DNA of 63,588 nt, counting the filler, from Platydemus manokwari (taxonomy: Eukaryota): assembly GCA_037951405.1 (NCBI GenBank). It is 5 parts of 5 records of this genome, joined end to end, with 100 filler letters (N's around TTAATTAATTAA, not from the genome) between each part and the next. Parts side by side here need not be neighbours in the genome. Positions count along the whole stretch, not along the records: positions 42,027 to 54,563 come from JBBMOY010093343.1; 4 more parts are not named here. The stretch is one strand, 5' to 3'. Each line of letters opens with the position of its first letter. Positions within the stretch are counted from its first letter, which is position 1. Below the pieces are notes generated by a model, which searched no databases, had not been told where the DNA came from, and was given only the letters and a program-made list of their open reading frames with translations. The position numbers were made by a program, and so were the translations under genes. Shown here in pieces: positions 42,027 to 54,563 of the stretch.

Positions 42027-42515
42027 CAATTTTAATTTACATTTTATTCAAATTTTAATCAGATTTAATTTAATTTTATAAAAAATTAAATCAAGGTAAA
42101 ATTAGAAATATTTGTTTAAATATTTGGATTTAAAATATATCGATTGTGTCTTGACTTTTATTGTTTTATTTTAGTGTGTGGTTTTTAAAATAGTAGAGGC
42201 TTACAATGACTTTTATTTATTTTAATTGAGTTGAGAAGTCATAAAGAAAAATTTTATATCTTCACCTAAAATCATTAGAAATAGTTATTTCGTTGAAAAT
42301 TTATAATTAATGAAGACATTGTTATGAATCAGATAATGCTTAAATTAGATAATTGTTAAAAATTTTCCCGAGTAGGTCGTAGCAAACGGTCAAATATTTA
42401 CGCTACCTTATAATATTCCTGTTTGCACTAAATTTTCTTGAAGTTTTAAGTCCTTACCAGAGGTTAATTCATTATTTATTTTAATTATCATCAATTTATA
42501 ATAATATTCTTATCA

Positions 42516-45500
42516 ATGGAGTAAGTTTGTTTTTCATAATTTAATAAGGTTTTCGATCTTAAAATATCTTAAACTCTAAAACACTAGAAATATTTTTGAA
42601 AATTTTCAAAAAATGAAGGTTTGACTTCAATTATTTATGGTGAATAATTTTGAGTAAAAATATTTTTTATTAAAGAAATAATTTTATGAGATTTCGTAAC
42701 AAAATTTTTTATATTTTTCTGTTTTTAATGTAACCTATAGTTTTTATAAAGAAATTCTAGATTTTTCAACCCAAATCTTTCAAACAATCTCTCAGAACAT
42801 ATGTAACATGAAATTGATTTAATAAAAAATTATATTATTACAATGCATTATAAGTTCAATTTTTTCGATTTATTTGGGCTTTCATTAAATATATAGATTT
42901 TAACGAGAACAACGAGCTTGTTAAGGACTGCCCAATGTGTTGCGGTGAGTATAAAATAACCGAAGTTGGTTTTTTATTACAAATCTAAATTATTTATAAT
43001 AAAATAATTGTGTGCTCTAGATGTGCAATTTTATAACATGCACACACGAGTTTTGTAAATCTTGTACGATGGACTGGCTTCGAGAAATTATTATGAAAAA
43101 ATATCCGTGGAAATGGAATTGTCCTTGTTGTACTGATAGGGATTCTAATAATATTGATAGAAATATATATTATGATCAATTAAGAAAAATAATTTCGCAT
43201 GAAGAAAGTCTTTTGAAAGTATTTGAGGAGAAACTTTTGTTCGAGAAATCAAGGCAGTGTTTTAACTTTTATTGGTGTGCCAATGAAATGGTTATATTTC
43301 GATGTGTATTGATTTTATTTCATATGCTATTCATAAATTATGATATTAATAATTGATTATATAACCAATAATAATTAATTAATAATTTTTATTTATTGGG
43401 ATTTGTTGTTAATTTGATATCCAGTACAGCGATCAATTATTTAGAAAGATAATATAATAATTCTTATGAGATTTTCAATGATTAGATATTTAATTTTAAA
43501 ATAATCAAATTAAAAAATAAAATATATTAAAAATGATATTTTGTTTAAATATTTTTGTGATTATTTTTCTATTTATATATCATGAAATAGTAACCGATGA
43601 GTGACCATGGATTTGGACTCGACTTTGACACCATAAAAATAGAGACAGTAAATAATATATAATTTAGAGCAGTGTTCTTGAAAAATTTTGTTCATTGTAG
43701 GCTAGTGATGACGATTTTTGATTACTGTGATTTGTTACTTGTTTATTTTCTTCTGTTTTTCTATGTCAAACAATGCAGTTAATATTATTCATAATTCGTA
43801 TACGAATCAATTGTAATTATATGGTCACAGAGATAGTGGGAAGCACATTCACAAGAACATTGTTTGTTGTTTGACAAATAAACTTCTTTCCCAAATCTTT
43901 CAACCATCGGATCTTATTAAAAAATATTCAATAAAAACAATTTGCCTAATACATCAAAAATGGCGTTAATAATCAATATAAAAAAGAAAATCTTGTTATT
44001 TTTACGTCTACCTTATAAAGTACAGCTAGTTATAACCTGGTAATTTACTTGAATTATCTTTATGAATTCTTATCAATAATTTCATAATGTTTAGAAATAG
44101 TTTTATTATGATAATTTTATAGTGCAAAAAGGTTTTCCAATCACAGAATGGTAAGATGATACAGTGTCCAGAATGTCAACAATATATGTGTGCATCATGT
44201 AAAAGAAGTGTAGGATTTCTTTTCATGTTAATCTGTATTTTGATTTTTAAAATTCCAATATTAGTGGGTACCGGAGCACGAGGGAAGAAAGTGTGATGAA
44301 TATCAACTTCTGATGCTAAATAATTATCTGGGCAATTGGAAATTTTCCAAATACCCCACTCTCAGTAAACAATATCGATTATTTCATAAATTCATTTTTT
44401 TAAATGTGTTTATTACTGTTTAATTTAAAGCAAAATAAACATTTTTTGTTAATTAATCGATTAAAAACCATTGAATATAAATAAAATATAAAAATAAAAA
44501 AATAACATTTATTATTGAATGAATGTTTTATTTAATTTTCTTTGATTTTTTAAAATGAATTAAAACGTTTTATTAAAACAAATTGCTAACTCTGATATTC
44601 AAACAAAAATTGGGTGGAATTTATTTTTAAACAGAATGTGTTGACTGTGGAAAGCGTCATTCTATCGATACCGGAGGAAGTCTTCACTTTCAATGTAGCA
44701 AACCTTTTTGTAGAGGTTGTTTTCAGTTCTTTGTCATGGTGATATGAATATATTTATGTCATTAATTTTATCTATGCTTAGAAATGTGATAAACCCAATT
44801 GTGAAATGACACATTTTCACGGCCATCATCCACGAAATTGCTTGTATTTTCTTCGGGATTATTGTGTAGAAGATTTGGAAAAAATGTTAAAGGTCAGTTT
44901 TGAATAAATATTAATTTAAGAATCAATAGGTTAAGAAGTCAAATAGGTTTCAATAATCAATATAATAATGAAAATATATTTACATTAACGCTTTCAATGA
45001 TCAATATAATTTGCTTGAATATTGTGATGAAATATGTTTGTGTGGAACTTATTAAATTGGTGTTTCAATTCGTGTTTAATATGAATGAACAATTCAATTG
45101 ATTTTTGGGGTTAAAGAAATTTATTACGATTGCCATGAAATGAGAATTGTCTATGAAATTTATTTTTTGAAATGACATATTAAAATACGTTCAGGTACAT
45201 GATTGGTGAGATAAACGAATATCAATTTAATAATAGAAAATTTTTTATCAAATCATCACAAATCTTTTCAAAAGAAATAAATTCAAATATAAATCAATAT
45301 AATGTGAACAAGAAATTAAATAGTTTGTGATCAATTTTTGGAGAACTATGGAATGTATTAGAGAAGGTATTCAATTGGTTGCACCAGATTCAAGATCAAA
45401 TAATTGCACAAATTACATAATATGCCAGTTGTGTAATGAGTTATTGATGTTAAAATACACCAGTTTTAAATTCAACTACCTTAAATTTCTTTGACCCATA

Positions 45501-46973
45501 CAAATATATACAAAATATCGATACATACAATCAACTCATGACAGAGGAGATCACAATATGCACTTCATGAAATGATGAATTAATTCGAAAAATTATTTCG
45601 AGTACATCAATCAATAATCACGACAAATATGTTTTTGTAGCAAAATTGAGAATAATGTCAATAATAAATCGCATGGTTGATAAGAATCTTACAGAATCTG
45701 ATTTTTAGCTTTTCTTTCATTTCTTTCAGTGTAGTTGTTTTGTAATCTGTCTTAGGCGACCATGACTTACTATTTCTGTTATCATAAATAAACCTTTTCG
45801 ATTATAAATATTTGTTTTATATAATATTGTCTCCAAAAACAAATTTCTATTAAGTTAATCGATATTTCGGTAGACTATTTCGATTATTAGTTTGTAATAA
45901 GTTTTATTGGCTAAATGGAATTGTTCCTGTTTTAGTTATCTGATCGTTAGGAGTGTTTTTGAGTGAATATCAATGAATTTGAATAATGAAATAGTTATTT
46001 AGTAGTCGTACAAATTGAATAGCGAAGTTAGATTTCAAGAAAACAATAACAACGGGATTTAAAAAGTATCAGGCCTAAGAAAAATATTAATAATGTTAAG
46101 ACATGATGATCATTCAATTTTTTGATTAAAATTATGCTCTTAAAGTTTTGGTTGTTTGTAATATTTTTTAAAAATTCGGGCCATTTATACATAGGTCTTT
46201 TAATGTTCTAACGAATTGATCACGATTATCTAAACTTATTCTTATCTAGTGTCTCAGATGTTTTAGGAAAATAATTTATGGATTTACAAATTGCATCTTA
46301 TACTGAGAGATAAAAGATTTACACGTTTTGAATTCAATTAAAATATTAGCATCTAAAATTGTGTAAAATCAATATTGAATATATTTTATAATTTTTTATA
46401 GAAATCAGATTATCCAAAACTAACGGGAAAAAGACATAATAATTGTAATTTACTCATTTCACGTGATGGTTATGATGACCATATATGTAATGAAGCGACA
46501 TACGCATCCACTGGATTGTGTGAGTAAGTGTTATTATTGATTTAAATATTCGAGTGGCAACCATTGAGACAACAATTTATAAATGACAACGCAATCATTT
46601 CAATTATTGATTATACATTACTTAACAGTTATAATTAAATTAGACTTTATCAATGAATTATATGGCGATTATTTATATATAAATTCCTAGGAGACATTAT
46701 AAAGAATATCTTGTTCATTTCATCCAACGATACAAAGTTGATCCAGCCGAATTTGCAAATATTAATGAGCTCAATCTAATGCTGTTTCAATCATTACTTC
46801 CTAAATTACACAAAGATAAAGATGAAAACGACAATCTATTTCGAGAACGATTGATAAAAGTCATTGGAAATTTCTTTTAATTTATTATACAATAATTGTC
46901 AAATTAGACGGTCAAGGAATCTTGTCCATTATATGTTCCGAAGGAATCCAATTTGTCATTATTCAATAATTGA
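42516..46973 (+). CDS. HOIP/RNF31-like RBR-LDD protein (~387 aa) with catalytic Cys->Ser; exons 42516-42520, 42741-42802, 42897-42964, 43021-43290, 44123-44209, 44265-44364, 44635-44738, 44782-44892, 46402-46523, 46691-46859, 46908-46973
   Basis: All ten introns are GT-AG with compatible phases. RING1: CPMC...CTHEFCKSC...CPCC. IBR: WCANEMC...CPEC...CASC...HEGRKC. RING2: CVDC...GGSLHFQC...FCRGC. HOIP-specific LDD: HGHHPRNCLYFLRD and GLCERHYKEYLV...DP. The first two exons are less certain. Confidence 0.85.
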
Positions 46974-47249
46974 TGAGAACTATATGGGAATCGTCCAAAT
47001 GAAATATTTTACTGAAAATTGATTTTGTGATTTAATGATTTTGCCGTAATATATCCATTTATAAAGTTTTGTTAATTTTTATTTTCATTTTTCATATGAT
47101 AAAAATAATGACAATGTTTAATAAAAATGTTTTTTGATGTCTTTTATCTGTGTAATTTCATATGATTTCAGAAATCAATAATTGTTTATAATTTAGAAAA
47201 CCGGTATTGGTTAAAATAGAATAAATTATAAATGAATTATGAGATTTAT

Positions 47250-47850
47250 GTTTATCCATATTTATAATATATGATGAGTGGAATTGGTGTTTTTTCTAAG
47301 TTTTTGAAAATTTTTATGATGTTTATGCATAGATTTTTAACTACTTAATCTCAATAAATTCTATCCAGTCATCGTCCTTCATAGATTCACTCATCTTATC
47401 TAGCGGGCTTTGACATAAGCTCAAAAAATCTGCAAATCTTATACATTCATAATCAAATTAAATATAAATTTCTTAGTATCATGGCAATGTTTTTATTTGT
47501 TTTTTATTGGATTTTAGAGGTGAGTCTTTGAAAATTAAATGAAAATCAACGTTTTGGTCCATTAGTTCAGTTTTCCAGCATGTTTATTATCTTTTCTTTA
47601 AAATAAAGATCGTGATCTCGAATTTTTAATCTTTTTATTTTTAATATAATACTCTAATTTTAATTCTTTTTGCTTTTTGGATTTTATTTTGTTTTTTCAA
47701 AGAATAAAATGTTCGTGTTACCCATAAGATCAATTGATTTTGATTTTTTATTCCGAATATTTGTTTTCTGTGGTTAAGATGACCGATCCATATCCATCTC
47801 CCACATTTATATAACCAAAGTATTTGGTTTTGTATTTATCAAATATATTT
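47250..47850 (-). mobile_element. Possible Polinton/Maverick DNA polymerase B relic
   Basis: Broken minus-strand peptides KIRDHD and IRFADFLSLCQSPLDKMSESM resemble the pPolB RDHxH and RFxDS...SLDKL motifs. Judged from memory, not by search. Confidence 0.3.
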
Positions 47851-47960
47851 TACAGATTAAAGTTATATAAAAACGAGTGATATTATCATTATTTTGATAA
47901 TATATTTAAATTTAAATTATTTCAATCGATACCATATTCAAAATTTAAATTCCAACCCTT

Positions 47961-48308
47961 ATGTCAAGATATACAGGTTGCCAATGCCATGATCAGGAAG
48001 TACCATTTCCAAATTGCGTTTTACCATCTGAAACCGCTCGATTAGAAGAATTGCGAATAAGACAACGTGAAGCTTTACAACAGCAAGAGGCTTTAGCAAG
48101 AACACAAAAATGCGTTTGTAAATGCCATCCGGGATCGATTTTCTACGCAGATGGCTTAACACTGAAGCGTGACCGAACGTTAGAAAAACAAATAATGCCA
48201 ATTTATCCAATAATTCCAGATAAATTTCGTCCAAACTTTTCGTACGAAAAAAATTGCCAGAATAAAAAACCCGCATTCACCTCTCCAAATTATAACAGTA
48301 CAAAGTGA
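47961..48308 (+). CDS. 115-aa orphan protein with CQCH and CVCKCH motifs flanking a Q/E/R-rich helix
   Basis: ATG-to-TGA single exon with GC well above flanks and AATAAA at 48347. No family recognised. Confidence 0.65.
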   Translation: MSRYTGCQCHDQEVPFPNCVLPSETARLEELRIRQREALQQQEALARTQKCVCKCHPGSIFYADGLTLKRDRTLEKQIMPIYPIIPDKFRPNFSYEKNCQNKKPAFTSPNYNSTK

Positions 48309-50183
48309 ATGAATCACTCATGCGGAAGATATTGATGTGAACGATTAATAAAGCCATTAGATACTTCATTCTTCATTAATACCTTGAAAATCAATATTTG
48401 ATAAAAGCGAGATAAAATATTTAAAATTTATTATTAATAATAGCTAAAGTAGAACAAAAATTTATTATTTTTTTCAAATAATTTATTAACAATACTTGTG
48501 ACTTCATAATACTTCAATATGTCTGCAGATATATCCACAATTTTTATAGAAAATCTATATTTTATATCATTTTCAATGAAGATTGTAAGTGGCTATCATT
48601 TAATAAAGCATTCATTGAAAAGGATTGGAAAAGTCAATTCATAAAATTTTGCATTTTACTACAATTATTTAAACTAACTAATATCTTCGAATTAATGTCT
48701 TTTGATATAATTTCCCAAATTTTTTAAATTCAAATTTTAAAATCCTCACAAATATAAAAACTTTATTACTTATATATACTTGAAATTGTAGGCAATAATT
48801 AATCATAATGCTAATCACAAAAATAATTAGGATTGTTACTTAATTTTACTTTTAAGGTCTTTTTAATTATTTTATAATAATAATAATTATTAATGGCCCG
48901 AACTCTGATGACTCACGGGAAGTGATGATCCTTAATATTTGATGTTTTTTCTTTTCGATCTTATATGAAGGCAAGATGAGCAGCACCGGATAGTCTATTT
49001 ATTAAAATTTTATAATGGAACCCTATATGGAATTTCTTTCTATTGTTTCTAACTTCTCCAACAGTAACTATAAAAAATTTATAATCACGCTCAATGACAA
49101 TTTATTGACTTTTCTCTTCATATCTTTTAAACTACCGAGCAGGTAATCAATTGAGAGTGATAATGACAGATTTGTGAAATGATTTGTCTATCAAAATCCA
49201 AAATAACACTCTGCTTAGATACAAAAATATATTACTAGAACAATTACAATTGATTTTTAAATAAAGCCGATTTAATCCTTACAGTTCGCAGTAATGACTT
49301 AACAAGCACCATATGTTGAGTACAACCAATTAAAGAATGAGCTTTGATCAGGTAAATACGAAATACACATACACATATTTATATGATTTTAACGCTAAAA
49401 GCATTTTACTGAACTTCTGGACCAAATGGCCTTTTCTTTTGACTATGGTAAACGATTTCAAATAACTAGGTTTTACCAGATAACAAATGGACATACACGA
49501 ACATTGAATATGTAGAACAGTAATGGTTTTGATCACGAACAAATATCTTCCAACAGTAGTAAAATCGAGCAAAGGCACTGTCCGATGTTGATATATTTAT
49601 ACGATTTTTGGATTTAATTAACCGTTATTTCTTTTATTATTTATATTTTTGGGTTTTATAATTCCAAAGGATTTTTATAATTTATAAAATTTAATTCTAC
49701 TTCCATGCGGGTGTTTTTGATTTATTACATTATTTTAAACCATTTTTACACGCGCTTTAAATAATGGCTAAGTATATTTCAAAAGGGATTTTCCATTTAT
49801 TATTCAGTTCTATTTATTATTATTTTATTCATAATATAAAATTCCTAAGATTAAACTATACACTCAATATAGCTAATTTTTTCATCCAATAAAGTATTTT
49901 TTCATAATATAAAAGATAAATGTTATTTAGACATAGATGAGCCAATTGTCAAAATTAATTTAATGGATTTCTCAAAACATCAACAATAATAATATTGATA
50001 AAATAAAGAAATATTAAGCATTCCATCCAAACAAAATATTCATTTTACAAATATCTTTTTCTTATATCAGATAATCTCCTTTTTCGTCTGAAATCTACTT
50101 ACAGGTAATTCACTTTCTCATCACATTATTTCATACAAATCTCGAAAGTCGTCAAAAAATATTCTTCAGCTGTTTCGAATAAT

Positions 50184-50821
50184 TGTTGTGGTAAAACCGT
50201 TTTCTTCCAAAAATATCCCTCACACTATGTTTCAATGTCTTGTGTTTCATTTTAATATTATTGTTGCTTTATCAAACAACAATTTGAATCTACAAATCTG
50301 TATTAAATAAAATAATACACTCAAAGTCTCAATAATAACAACAACAAATCTATACTCAATTCACAAAGAAAATCATTCAAGATTGGATCAGCGCCCAAAA
50401 GTCAAACACAGAATGAAGAGTAATAAAAAAAACTGATTACCAAAATCACACGTAAGGTAAGCGCTGAAATTACCGCCGAAAAAAGACTGGCGGGAATCAA
50501 TGGAACTCAACCGCTTTTATAGACCTATCGGGTGTGTATGCTTCATGTCACAGATCTTCGTTTTCAATTCGCTGAATTTGTTTGTGAATTGATATACTTG
50601 AAATTTTCCTTATATCTCTCGTGCCATTGGCAGATATTTGAGTTTGCTGCTGTTTGTAGGTACGCGCTTGTCGATTCTTAGCTTCTAAATGTGGATTAAC
50701 ATTAGAATGAATCTGATTGGTTAACAGAACTTAGTTTATCTGGTTTGTGTGTATTGACCCTTTTTAGGGTTCTTTCCTTGGTTCTTGTGACCTTTTTGAT
50801 TGATTCGTGATATACCTAACA
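50184..50821 (-). mobile_element. ~640-bp solo LTR of the same family
   Basis: TGTT...AACA termini and strong similarity to ~10445-10750 (inverted) and ~11030-11383. TSD unclear. Confidence 0.7.
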
Positions 50822-51249
50822 TTATGCATGGTCATTATAAATATTAACTCAAGGAAAACATTTATAGATAAATTTTATTTTTAATTATAGTTCGAAATTT
50901 ATAATATTCTGTTTAAAAAATCAGAACCGTGAATGTTGACTGTGTCTATTTGTGGGGATTTATTTCTTGAGATGGGTAGATCTCTACATTCAAAAATTGT
51001 GAAGCAGAGTTAGTTTGCGATTTTTCAGTATTTTCACCCACAAATGTAAAAAAGTGTTCCTTAATCTTTTTCAATATCATTAATTTTCACGAATGATTTG
51101 ATATTAAAATTTAATTTTGAGTATGTGTTTCTAAAGGTACATATTGAACTTTAATTTAATAAAAAATTTCAATCTTACCGGAAAAATGTGTGAGTAAATT
51201 TATATTTTCAGTGTTCCTCATAATTCTGTGTATTTTTGCTTTTCTGGAT

Positions 51250-51721
51250 TGACAAAGCATTTTGAATGATGCTGTTGGGTTCTACTTCTAAATTACTGAA
51301 TAATCACTGACACCAAAACTCGAAGGCTATAGATTTTATTTCCTATCCGCGTACTGATCAGTAAGACTTAGAAATACTTGCACCACTCATAAACATAATC
51401 AAAACCTGGCTTTCAACTTCAGATTTATGTGTAATTTTTGTGTGATGTTGTATCACATCTTTGCTTTCCATGGCTTATAAGTTTTTGCAGAAATGGGATT
51501 GTGTATTGTTGTGTGGCTATGTCCGTTTTTTCAATTGATAGTTTAACACCAAACTCCAATGTGAATGGTTGGTTACCATGCCTGTATGATTGTGTAGGTA
51601 TGGAAATGTTTAAAGTGCTTAAACAATGGTCGCAAGGTGTAAATCCGTTTTTCTTTTGCAGAATTTCATCACACTCAACAATACCATATTTGTCCCAAAA
51701 CTAATGACCGGGCTTAGACAT
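51250..51721 (-). mobile_element. Possible decayed hAT (BED finger) transposase 5' part
   Basis: Minus strand MSKPGH*FWDKY...CDHCLSTL...YRH resembles a BED zinc finger; contains stops. Confidence 0.3.
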
Positions 51722-54109
51722 TTTCAATTAAATATTAAGTAATATATCAAATATTAATTTTATCTTCATCTTCTAACCATTGGATCTAGTTTTGTCATGT
51801 TTCGAGTTTAGTTTTATTTTTATAATTTGTTTTTGCAATTATGAAGAAGTAGATTTACTAACAAAGCTCATTTGTTAATGATACTTTTATGTAACCTCTT
51901 TTTAAGTAAAAGTTTACACTTTAATTTGTCGAGTATGGATAAAACGTAATTCTAAAAATAATATTCTAACTACTTTCTACATGATTTTTTGCATTTGCAT
52001 AGAAACTTTATAAAATTTCCAAAACCACATTTGAACACGTGCATTCAAGCTGCTAATTGAAAATCAATATTTTTAAAATTGTAAATCGTCTTAATAAACT
52101 CCTGGTGTGTTTAGTAATGTAGTAGTAATTCGTTCTTATCAAATAATTGGAAAATTGTTCAAAGCATGGATATATTTCATATATCCAGCTGATAATACGA
52201 TAATCTTTTTGAAATGAATTCTTTGTATCCATATAAGTGAATTTTTGGAAATAAATTACTTGACTAAAAAGCGAATTTCTAGACAGTAAAACCCAAAAAA
52301 TGCGCACCCATCGATGAATCGATAATCAACATGAGATAATATTTCCAGAGTACATAAGAAATTCATTACAACTAATTTAATATAAATGCAATAGGGATTT
52401 CCAATATAAAATTCAAGACATTGCACCATTTATTTAATACGAACGATTGATATTCGATCAATTTCTTCAATAGATAAATTAATAAACACAACTTTGCATT
52501 TAATATGATTCCATTATAATTGTATAGGAATACACAATATTTTAAGCTTTATTTTATCTAAAACCAAATCAATTTAATAATTAAGTGACGAAAATTAAAC
52601 CAAATTGTCTTCAAACAAGGCACTAAACTTAAAATAAACAGGGAAATCTTATCGAACCATAAAAGTGGTAAAAATCGATAACTTACTCACATCAAGAGAA
52701 ATTTATTCGGAGAATAAGAAACAACCGATAACGAAATTTATGTAAATTGAAATTAGTATTTTTTTTACTGTAAGTTAATAGTAAAATTATATTTTATAAT
52801 TTTGTCTTTTCTTGACAAAGGAACAAGAAATGGTAGGAAAAAGCACCGAGATAAAAAATTTCTCTAGTAGAAAATTTCAAGACAATTTGCCAACACAATG
52901 ATGTTCAAATATTTGCTTGTTCTTGTAGATGTAACTCGATAGTTTTATAATTTAGTTTACATTTACAAGCTGATACATTTTTTTTATTAAGAAGTATGTC
53001 AAAACGACTTTAGGAAAGTTCAATATGAAAAGTATGTTTAACCAAAATATTCATACAAATTATTTATATTAACTTTAAAATTCTCAAAACAGTCACAAAG
53101 TTTTAACTTGAAAACACTTGATAAATGAATTTGACATTAATTCCAACTAAACATCAAACATGCTATATAAAATAATCAGCTCTTGCAAGTGGGTTTCTCA
53201 AAATTATTAAAAATACTAAAAAGTCAAATGTTTATTAAATATACAAAACTGCAGTTAAATTAATTAGATAAATATCATTAATTTTATTTTAAAAATGTAG
53301 TAGTAATGAATTTGTTAATCACAACATAAATAATTTTTAAAGCTATTTAGTATGAAAGATCTTTATTAACATTATTTTTATAGTATTAATTGGAACAGAA
53401 AAACAATAAAACTGATCGATCTATTTCAAACTATCAAGTCACTTCAAATAATCCATTGAAAACTACACAAAAGCAAAAATATTGGAAATCTCAAATAAAA
53501 TTTAGCCGATTGTCCACGAAATTTATTTCAAAACAATATAATTGACAGAAAGATATAGTAAAATATTAAAATAATGATGAGGATGACACATGCAAAAAAT
53601 TATCATTGATATTAAGATTACCACCACCAACAAATAGTTGAGAATAGCAAAAGACAGCGCTATGCCTCAGTGTTTTGTTGCGGTGGAGAGTCTAGTGTTT
53701 TATCTTTGTTTAAATACTTTTCTTCTGCTCTCCATTTCTCTCTTGGCTGACTGTAAACTTTGATGATCTAAGTAAAATTTATAATTATTATTATATATTA
53801 TTATTGTTATTATTATAAACATCTTTTATTTAAATTTCAAATTATAGTTTTGGATGAAGACCTTTGTAAAATTGATAATCGCTTATTAAAAAAGTTGTAA
53901 TGTTTCTATTGCAGTGGAATAACTTTTCATAGATTTAATCCAACCAAATTTATGTTGTACATTATATTTGTATAAAATACTTCTGTAAATCTGGTCTGGA
54001 TTTATAAATTAATCGAAACATTTATTTTTCGAATAGAATATTGCAACAAGATTTAAATTTGTGTTAAATCAGTGATTTTTGAATGAATTTTGCAACACCA
54101 ATCCAAATT

Positions 54110-54473
54110 CAGAGGTGTTTCATCCATATTGTCTATCTGTGACAATTCATAGCTAAACTGCTACCGGGTATTGATAACAAATTTGTGGAAAGATAGATGA
54201 ATTTTTCTTCATAGAATTCAAGTATTCTTTGGAAAAACTTGTTCTTGTTCTTATTGCCAAACCCTGACGTTTTCTAAATTTGTAGCACCAAACTGGATCT
54301 CCCTTAAATTCAGTGATATATTGAGCTTGTGCAATTTTCTTAGCCTCCTGCATGACCATCTTTGTTGAGGCTACAATGCCTCTCTGGCGGTGCTCTTCAT
54401 GCTTTGGCCACATTTCTCCATGTTTTGGTAAATGTCGATTTTCTTTAGGTGTTAGGATCCGAATCCAACCCAC
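54110..54473 (-). mobile_element. pogo/Tigger transposase fragment
   Basis: CENP-B-type HTH (EAKKIA...FKGDPVWCYKFRKRQGLAIRTRT) followed, after a frameshift, by NMDETPL (first D of the DDD triad). Confidence 0.8.
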
Positions 54474-54563
54474 AATGAGTTATATAAGCACATATCACGC
54501 CCACAAATATAATAATATAATTTAATTCCAAAAATAAACCAAATCCTATAAATAGAATTTAAT

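Follow-up and report, generated by a model that had tools for sequence, protein, structure and literature searches.

Can a HOIP-type ubiquitin ligase that carries serine in place of its catalytic cysteine still serve the cell, or is such a gene on its way to being lost? This question is raised by a gene of Platydemus manokwari, for which the sequence-only reading proposed exactly this replacement. The RING2 cysteine is essential for the function of RBR ligases, and the nearby histidine, H887, is required only for aminolysis (PMC7458406). The window, that is, the whole stretch of DNA analyzed, was 63,588 nucleotides in length including filler; the gene was located in the piece occupying positions 42027–54563, and all positions given below are counted along the window.

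Gene model and family assignment

Eight exons bounded by AG and GT were reconstructed on the plus strand between positions 42897 and 46880 (Table 1). The spliced frame consisted of 349 open codons with a TAA stop and encoded the RING1-IBR-RING2-LDD module of a HOIP/RNF31/LUBEL homolog. The piece was AT-rich, with a G+C content of about 25%; the corresponding fractions were 0.34 in the exons and 0.16–0.25 in the introns. Exon I gave no significant match when searched alone and was placed by its phase and by colinearity between exon F and the last exon (J). The spacing from exon A to the next exon was identical in P0002, one of the two relatives described below. Since exon A starts in the middle of a codon, at least one upstream exon must lie beyond the piece; no upstream exon was found in the 870 bases preceding exon A (42027–42896), and, thus, the gene extends in the 5′ direction past the edge of the piece. 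The sequence-only reading had counted 11 exons; this number was not reproduced, eight exons being found in the piece.

Table 1. Features of the HOIP-like gene and of its surroundings, with positions counted along the window.
Feature	Position	Strand	Content
Exon A	42897–42964	+	RING1, first C-x2-C (DCPMCCGEYKITE); mid-codon start; non-consensus donor GTTGGT
Exon B	43021–43290	+	Remainder of RING1 (C-x-H-x2-C-x2-C ... C-P-C-C), helical linker, IBR start (WCANEM); donor GTTATA
GC peaks in intron B–C	43567–43911		Two peaks with short ORFs
Exon C	44123–44209	+	IBR core (CKKVF...QCPECQQYMCASCKRS); weak Pfam IBR match, E 0.005; colinear with P0002
Exon D	44265–44364	+	IBR end (WVPEHEGRKC) and IBR-RING2 linker
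IBR-RING2 linker	44305–44364	+	LNNYLGNWKFSKYPTL, within exon D
Exon E	44635–44738	+	RING2 (Rcat); acceptor ...aaacag, donor gtgata
Active-site position (human C885)	44679–44681	+	AGT, Ser; one base from TGT
Catalytic His position (human H887)	44685–44687	+	CAC, His, kept
F-Q-C	44688–44696	+	Site of the three-residue (9-base) in-frame deletion; one Cys of the pair left
Exon F	44782–44892	+	Zinc-finger insert and LDD start (KCDKPNC...HFHGHHPRNCLYFLRD); PDB RNF31, E 2e-8
LDD R-D pair (human R935/D936)	44854–44859	+	Kept
Exon I	46402–46523	+	LDD middle, three Cys (NNC..., HIC..., GLC-E); consensus donor GTAAGT
Last exon	46691–46880	+	LDD helical base (RHYKEYLV...); TAA stop at 46878–46880; Pfam PF18091, E 6.7e-7
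ORF 3′ of the gene	47961–48305	+	115 codons, ATG to stop
Transposon remnant	53889–54479	−	pogo/Tc5 type, extends as far as the edge of the piece (54563)
Transposase HTH ORF	54156–54479	−	Tc5 transposase HTH (PF03221), E 6e-6
NMDETPLNLD-like stretch	54056–54160	−	Downstream of the HTH ORF, in another frame

Two of the introns start with GTT, not with GTA or GTG (GTTGGT at 42965–42970 and GTTATA at 43291–43296). The junctions implied by these donors match both relatives residue for residue, protein colinearity being the sole basis on which they were set. Further exons in 44893–46401 or 5′ of 42897 were considered and rejected: the candidate ORFs had neither Pfam nor PDB support, their phases did not fit, and they were also unneeded, as colinearity with the HOIP chain numbering was satisfied without them.

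The RING2 profile, composed of exon E and the relative P0001, matched RING2 of human RNF31/HOIP with an E value of 2e-11. For the RING1 profile (the gene, P0001, and P0002), the best PDB match was RNF31 (E 4e-6), and exon F was aligned with RNF31 from the PDB at the start of the HOIP LDD. The last exon matched the HOIP C-terminal domain PF18091 at profile positions 59–89 (29.8 bits, the cutoff being 23) and, weakly, residues 152–181 of the RNF31 chain in the PDB. Along the chain of HOIP, the matches of the gene were colinear (residues 15–56, 61–97, and 152–181 of 4LJO). Because RNF31 was the best solved-structure match for three parts of the protein, and given the PF18091 match and the colinearity, these alignments assign the gene by descent to the HOIP/RNF31/LUBEL family, of which it is a fast-evolving and very divergent member. 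Its earlier designation as a HOIP-like homolog with a conserved LDD is thus supported for RING1, RING2, and both ends of the LDD.

The zinc ligands of RING1 (C3HC4) and IBR as well as the other cysteines of RING2 were in place, and so were three cysteines and a histidine further down. In exon F, every Cys and His matching the human chain was kept, with the zinc-finger insert (C..C and H.HH..C) intact. The LDD contained the motif HGHHPRNCLYFLRD, the HGHHPR.CL..LRD motif, the HYKEYLV helix, and the R-D pair. The earlier statement that the gene is otherwise intact therefore holds for the eight-exon model, in which all 349 codons are open within the piece and the remaining ligands are kept.

Compared with human HOIP (RNF31; PDB 4LJO, 5EDV, and 6SC5), the gene has the same order of domains, RING1-IBR-RING2-ZF insert-LDD, and shares the catalytic His and the zinc-finger insert; the acceptor-ubiquitin motif LRD and the HYKEYLV helical base are conserved as well. 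In contrast to human HOIP, the LDD has a middle part shorter by about 14 residues, the identity in RING1 is only about 23%, Cys885 is replaced by Ser, and three residues including one cysteine of C890/C893 are missing. The Gln of the human catalytic triad is also replaced, by Pro in the Platydemus gene; this position is Lys in P0001, and, therefore, Gln is not conserved in the lineage anyway. The region corresponding to the N-terminal PUB/NZF/UBA part of human HOIP, in which PUB is a vertebrate feature, lies beyond the edge of the piece.

Among invertebrate members of the HOIP family, Drosophila LUBEL (CG11321) and its aligned orthologues share the conserved RBR-C region with the Platydemus gene. 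The R/D pair in the LDD of LUBEL is needed for activity, as the mutants R2754A/D2755A demonstrated (PMC5090701). The thioester-forming Cys and the zinc ligands were described as “perfectly conserved” in a HOIP-family alignment including D. melanogaster, A. mellifera, and P. humanus (PMC5090701); while these proteins keep all of them, the Platydemus gene has lost the Cys and one zinc ligand.

Neighboring features

Several other features were found in the piece. The minus strand at the edge of the piece contained what is left of a DNA transposon of the pogo/Tc5 type (Table 1). Its HTH-encoding ORF and the NMDETPLNLD-like stretch are in different frames, and no DDE domain was recognized in the remnant; because of these two facts, the element looks decayed.

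Just 3′ of the HOIP-like gene, an ORF of raised G+C content was identified (47961–48305 in Table 1), encoding Cys pairs as well as a helix-like stretch rich in Gln and Glu. No match to it was found in Pfam, in the Atlas, or by word search; it may be an orphan gene, or it may belong as an exon to a gene that was not recognized.

The intron between exons B and C (832 bases) contained two G+C peaks of 0.37–0.40 in 60-base windows, with short ORFs on both strands. The relatives have no residues at this point; therefore, these ORFs are not exons of the HOIP-like gene. An Rfam search from position 43600 on returned nothing usable.

The catalytic site in RING2

Exon E reads CVDCGKRHSIDTGGSLHFQCSKPFCRGCFQFFVM from position 44637. 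Where human HOIP has GGCMHF, the Platydemus gene encodes GGSLHF. In the profile alignment, the Ser was placed on the Cys of GGCMHF in human HOIP and of GGCLHF in P0001, and the His was placed on H887; the assignment to C885 was made via the numbering offset of 4LJO. Between HF and QC, three residues are missing in comparison with both P0001 (HFDCRQC) and human HOIP (HFHCTQC), which are of equal length there. The deletion removes one Cys of a C-x2-C pair (human C890/C893), that is, one of the four cysteines of the first RING2 zinc site. The replacement of the catalytic Cys, the retention of the His, and the loss of three residues including a zinc ligand had all been proposed from the sequence, and all were confirmed by the alignments with P0001 and human HOIP. 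Of the features expected of an active RBR, RING2 of the Platydemus gene thus retains the catalytic His, while the thioester-forming Cys is absent and the set of zinc ligands is incomplete.

A canonical version of the exon was sought elsewhere in the piece: when the piece was scanned in full and in all six frames for the motif of another Cys-bearing RING2 exon, only the reported exon was returned. RNA editing was rejected as a means of restoring the Cys, AGT being convertible to a Cys codon neither by A-to-I nor by C-to-U changes. Selenocysteine was likewise rejected, there being no TGA.

An error of the consensus or a haplotype-specific lesion would leave a functional allele with TGT and the full loop. 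AGT and TGT differ by one base, and only one sequencing run containing the stretch was found; it was DNA-like and probably the source assembly's own, so that it does not count as independent. No RNA run was found among the runs containing the stretch. On the other hand, this run contained 100% of the sampled 31-mers, and an error would have to account for the substitution and for a clean 9-base in-frame deletion at once. At least five more substitutions were present at otherwise conserved RING2 positions (P, Y, A, L, and A). Since the substitution, the deletion, and these five changes would all have to be wrong, we consider an artefact or a rare allele unlikely.

The engineered human mutants offer the closest experimental parallel. 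HOIP C885A is inactive. With C885S, which is the same exchange at the same residue as in the Platydemus gene, an oxyester arises slowly; it resists DTT, is labile in acid, and cannot be transferred to the substrate (PMC3432797). Another group did not observe this oxyester (PMC3463842). These are point mutants made in the laboratory in an otherwise wild-type RING2, while in the Platydemus protein a zinc ligand is missing as well and RING2 contains more substitutions. From the published behavior of C885A and C885S and from the essential role of the RING2 Cys, we infer that the Platydemus protein would not build Met1 chains via the canonical thioester relay.

A ligase that still works would have to use the Ser as a nucleophile activated by the His, forming an oxyester, or employ another cysteine of the rearranged RING2. 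In its favor, the Ser is followed two residues later by the retained His, ubiquitin can be loaded onto HOIP C885S as an oxyester (PMC3432797; PMC3940038), and the acceptor-ubiquitin platform is conserved, for which there is no obvious use unless ubiquitin is handled. Such activity is nevertheless improbable: the oxyester of C885S was slow and not transferable (PMC3432797) or was not seen at all (PMC3463842), an RBR acting through Ser was not described in the literature searched, and the remaining RING2 cysteines align with zinc ligands and not with a free nucleophile. The suggestion of an ester-based variant in the sequence-only reading runs contrary to the same C885S data. In its most specific form, a naturally selected RBR with a Ser nucleophile would be loaded from E2~Ub with a long-lived oxyester on a HOIP-type RING2-LDD. 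It would then serve either as a ubiquitin-charged trap or sensor or as a ligase that relays the ester to some acceptor different from the Met1 amine; this we regard as very improbable.

Relatives and rates of change

A HMMER search with the RING1 exon over 1.84 billion representative proteins yielded only two true relatives, P0001 (UniParc UPI00060A8EAE; E 4e-20, 48% identical in RING1) and P0002 (E 1e-10, 40% identical), both being fragmentary gene models found in UniParc only. Word searches for the gene returned the query itself or nothing, and metagenome scans returned nothing. The lineage is very poorly sampled.

P0001, the nearest relative, is the only one of the two that reaches RING2, where it is canonical and of human length (GGCLHFDCRQCGAKFCGGC, with GGCLHFDCRQC). 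It resembles the Platydemus gene in the extent of identity (48% in RING1 and about 50% in RING2), in the positions of the exon junctions (WCANE / W..EH), and in a lineage-specific C-x4-C in the IBR; it differs in that the active-site Cys and the full set of RING2 zinc ligands are kept. As judged from this single canonical RING2, the Ser and the deletion are lineage-specific and arose in the lineage of the Platydemus manokwari gene. The sequence-only reading had named retention of Cys in all close orthologs as a finding that would speak against a pseudo-ligase. The sole relative covering RING2 does keep the Cys; however, it is distant (48–53% identity), and, therefore, its Cys is not decisive against that reading.

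The linker between IBR and RING2 looks unusually diverged (Table 1); P0002 has KNDPDL there, and P0001 has KTDTDL.

Changes private to either gene were counted from the printed alignments with human HOIP as the outgroup, over 31 columns of RING2 (C871–C901) and 88 columns of RING1. In RING2, P0001 agreed with human HOIP and the Platydemus gene differed at 7 of 31 positions, with no position showing the reverse (exact binomial p ≈ 0.016, or p ≈ 0.03 without the gap column). The seven private losses comprised the catalytic and the deleted C together with P, Y, A, L, and A. RING1 showed five private losses in the Platydemus gene and two in P0001, a difference that was not significant, and the identity of RING1 to human HOIP was similar throughout (23% for the Platydemus gene, 26% for P0001, and 27% for P0002). 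The contrast of 7:0 with 5:2 indicates that the excess change is concentrated in the catalytic domain, as far as small counts compared post hoc can indicate it.

The share of possible substitutions creating a stop in the 349 codons was 6.2%. If the gene had drifted neutrally by about 0.1 substitutions per site, a value derived from the RING2 changes, about 6.5 stops would be expected, and the probability of finding none would be about 0.0015; this estimate treats P0001 as ancestral and the changes in RING2 as neutral, and the counts behind it are small and were chosen after the data had been seen. The lack of stops where about 6.5 are expected argues for continued constraint outside RING2, with the reservation that small post hoc counts and P0001 taken as ancestral underlie the argument.

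These data bear directly on the possibility that the gene is an unprocessed pseudogene or else a redundant duplicate, in either case a recently disabled copy in which the active site was hit first and which is too young to have accumulated stops and frameshifts. Two independent lesions in the catalytic core, one of them removing a structural zinc ligand, would be expected of such a copy, as would a RING2 exon scoring below the Pfam threshold: exon E reached 16 bits with IBR_1 (cutoff of 27), while RING2 of P0001 reached 46. The canonical state of P0001, the IBR-RING2 linker, which also looks degenerate in comparison with P0001, P0002, and human HOIP, the two non-consensus donors, and the lack of an RNA run among the sequencing runs containing the stretch are consistent with it as well. 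Against decay, 349 codons have stayed open in a genome of 25% G+C, all the other Cys and His ligands and the LDD motifs are intact, and the excess change is restricted to RING2. The exon borders are all usable, including the unusual donors, whose junctions are matched by both relatives. A disabled copy is a possible reading, somewhat less likely than the one given below.

Possible function

The combination of a lost catalytic residue with retained ligands in RING1, IBR, the zinc-finger insert, and the LDD, together with the R-D pair, is the pattern by which a pseudo-E3 is recognized. Since the parts that bind partners are kept and the canonical RING2 chemistry is presumably lost, we read the gene as encoding a putative non-catalytic HOIP-like protein, a pseudo-ligase, with its binding surfaces kept and retained for binding or scaffolding. 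We assign this reading a probability of roughly 40%. A pseudo-ligase had already been proposed from the sequence; the open frame of 349 codons, the retention of the other ligands, and the acceleration confined to RING2 favor it, the Cys of the sole relative covering RING2 counts against it, and the proposal is kept here as tentative.

In such a protein, the canonical RING2 reaction would be lost, as the thioester-forming Cys has become Ser and one cysteine of the first zinc site is deleted. Docking of E2~Ub would be preserved through the zinc ligands of RING1 and IBR. The zinc-finger insert would also be preserved along with the catalytic His, as would the LDD, which includes the R-D pair and provides the acceptor-ubiquitin platform. 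At most, the Ser might slowly take up ubiquitin in an oxyester that is a dead end. Loss of the zinc ligand could also destabilize RING2, an effect as compatible with decay as with repurposing. We infer that the pseudo-ligase would be retained by selection and would have a regulatory role in Met1-ubiquitin signaling.

The known pseudo-E3s BARD1 and TRAF2 provide a precedent of an E3 fold without catalysis that has structural or regulatory roles (PMC13061254). They differ from the present case in that they are of the RING type and do not bind E2, whereas the Platydemus protein is an RBR without the thioester-forming Cys. In a compendium in which 14 human RBR E3s were curated and treated as active, only the RING-type BARD1 and TRAF2 were named as pseudo-E3s (PMC13061254), and in our literature search, we failed to find a report of an RBR E3 naturally lacking the RING2 Cys.

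If the gene is only a dying copy, it represents ordinary gene decay. If it encodes a HOIP-type protein that has no catalytic Cys and retains the surfaces for E2 docking and for acceptor ubiquitin, it would be the equivalent among RBRs of the pseudo-kinases and the RING pseudo-E3s, and it could show how a fast-evolving lineage tunes Met1-ubiquitin signaling or gives it up.
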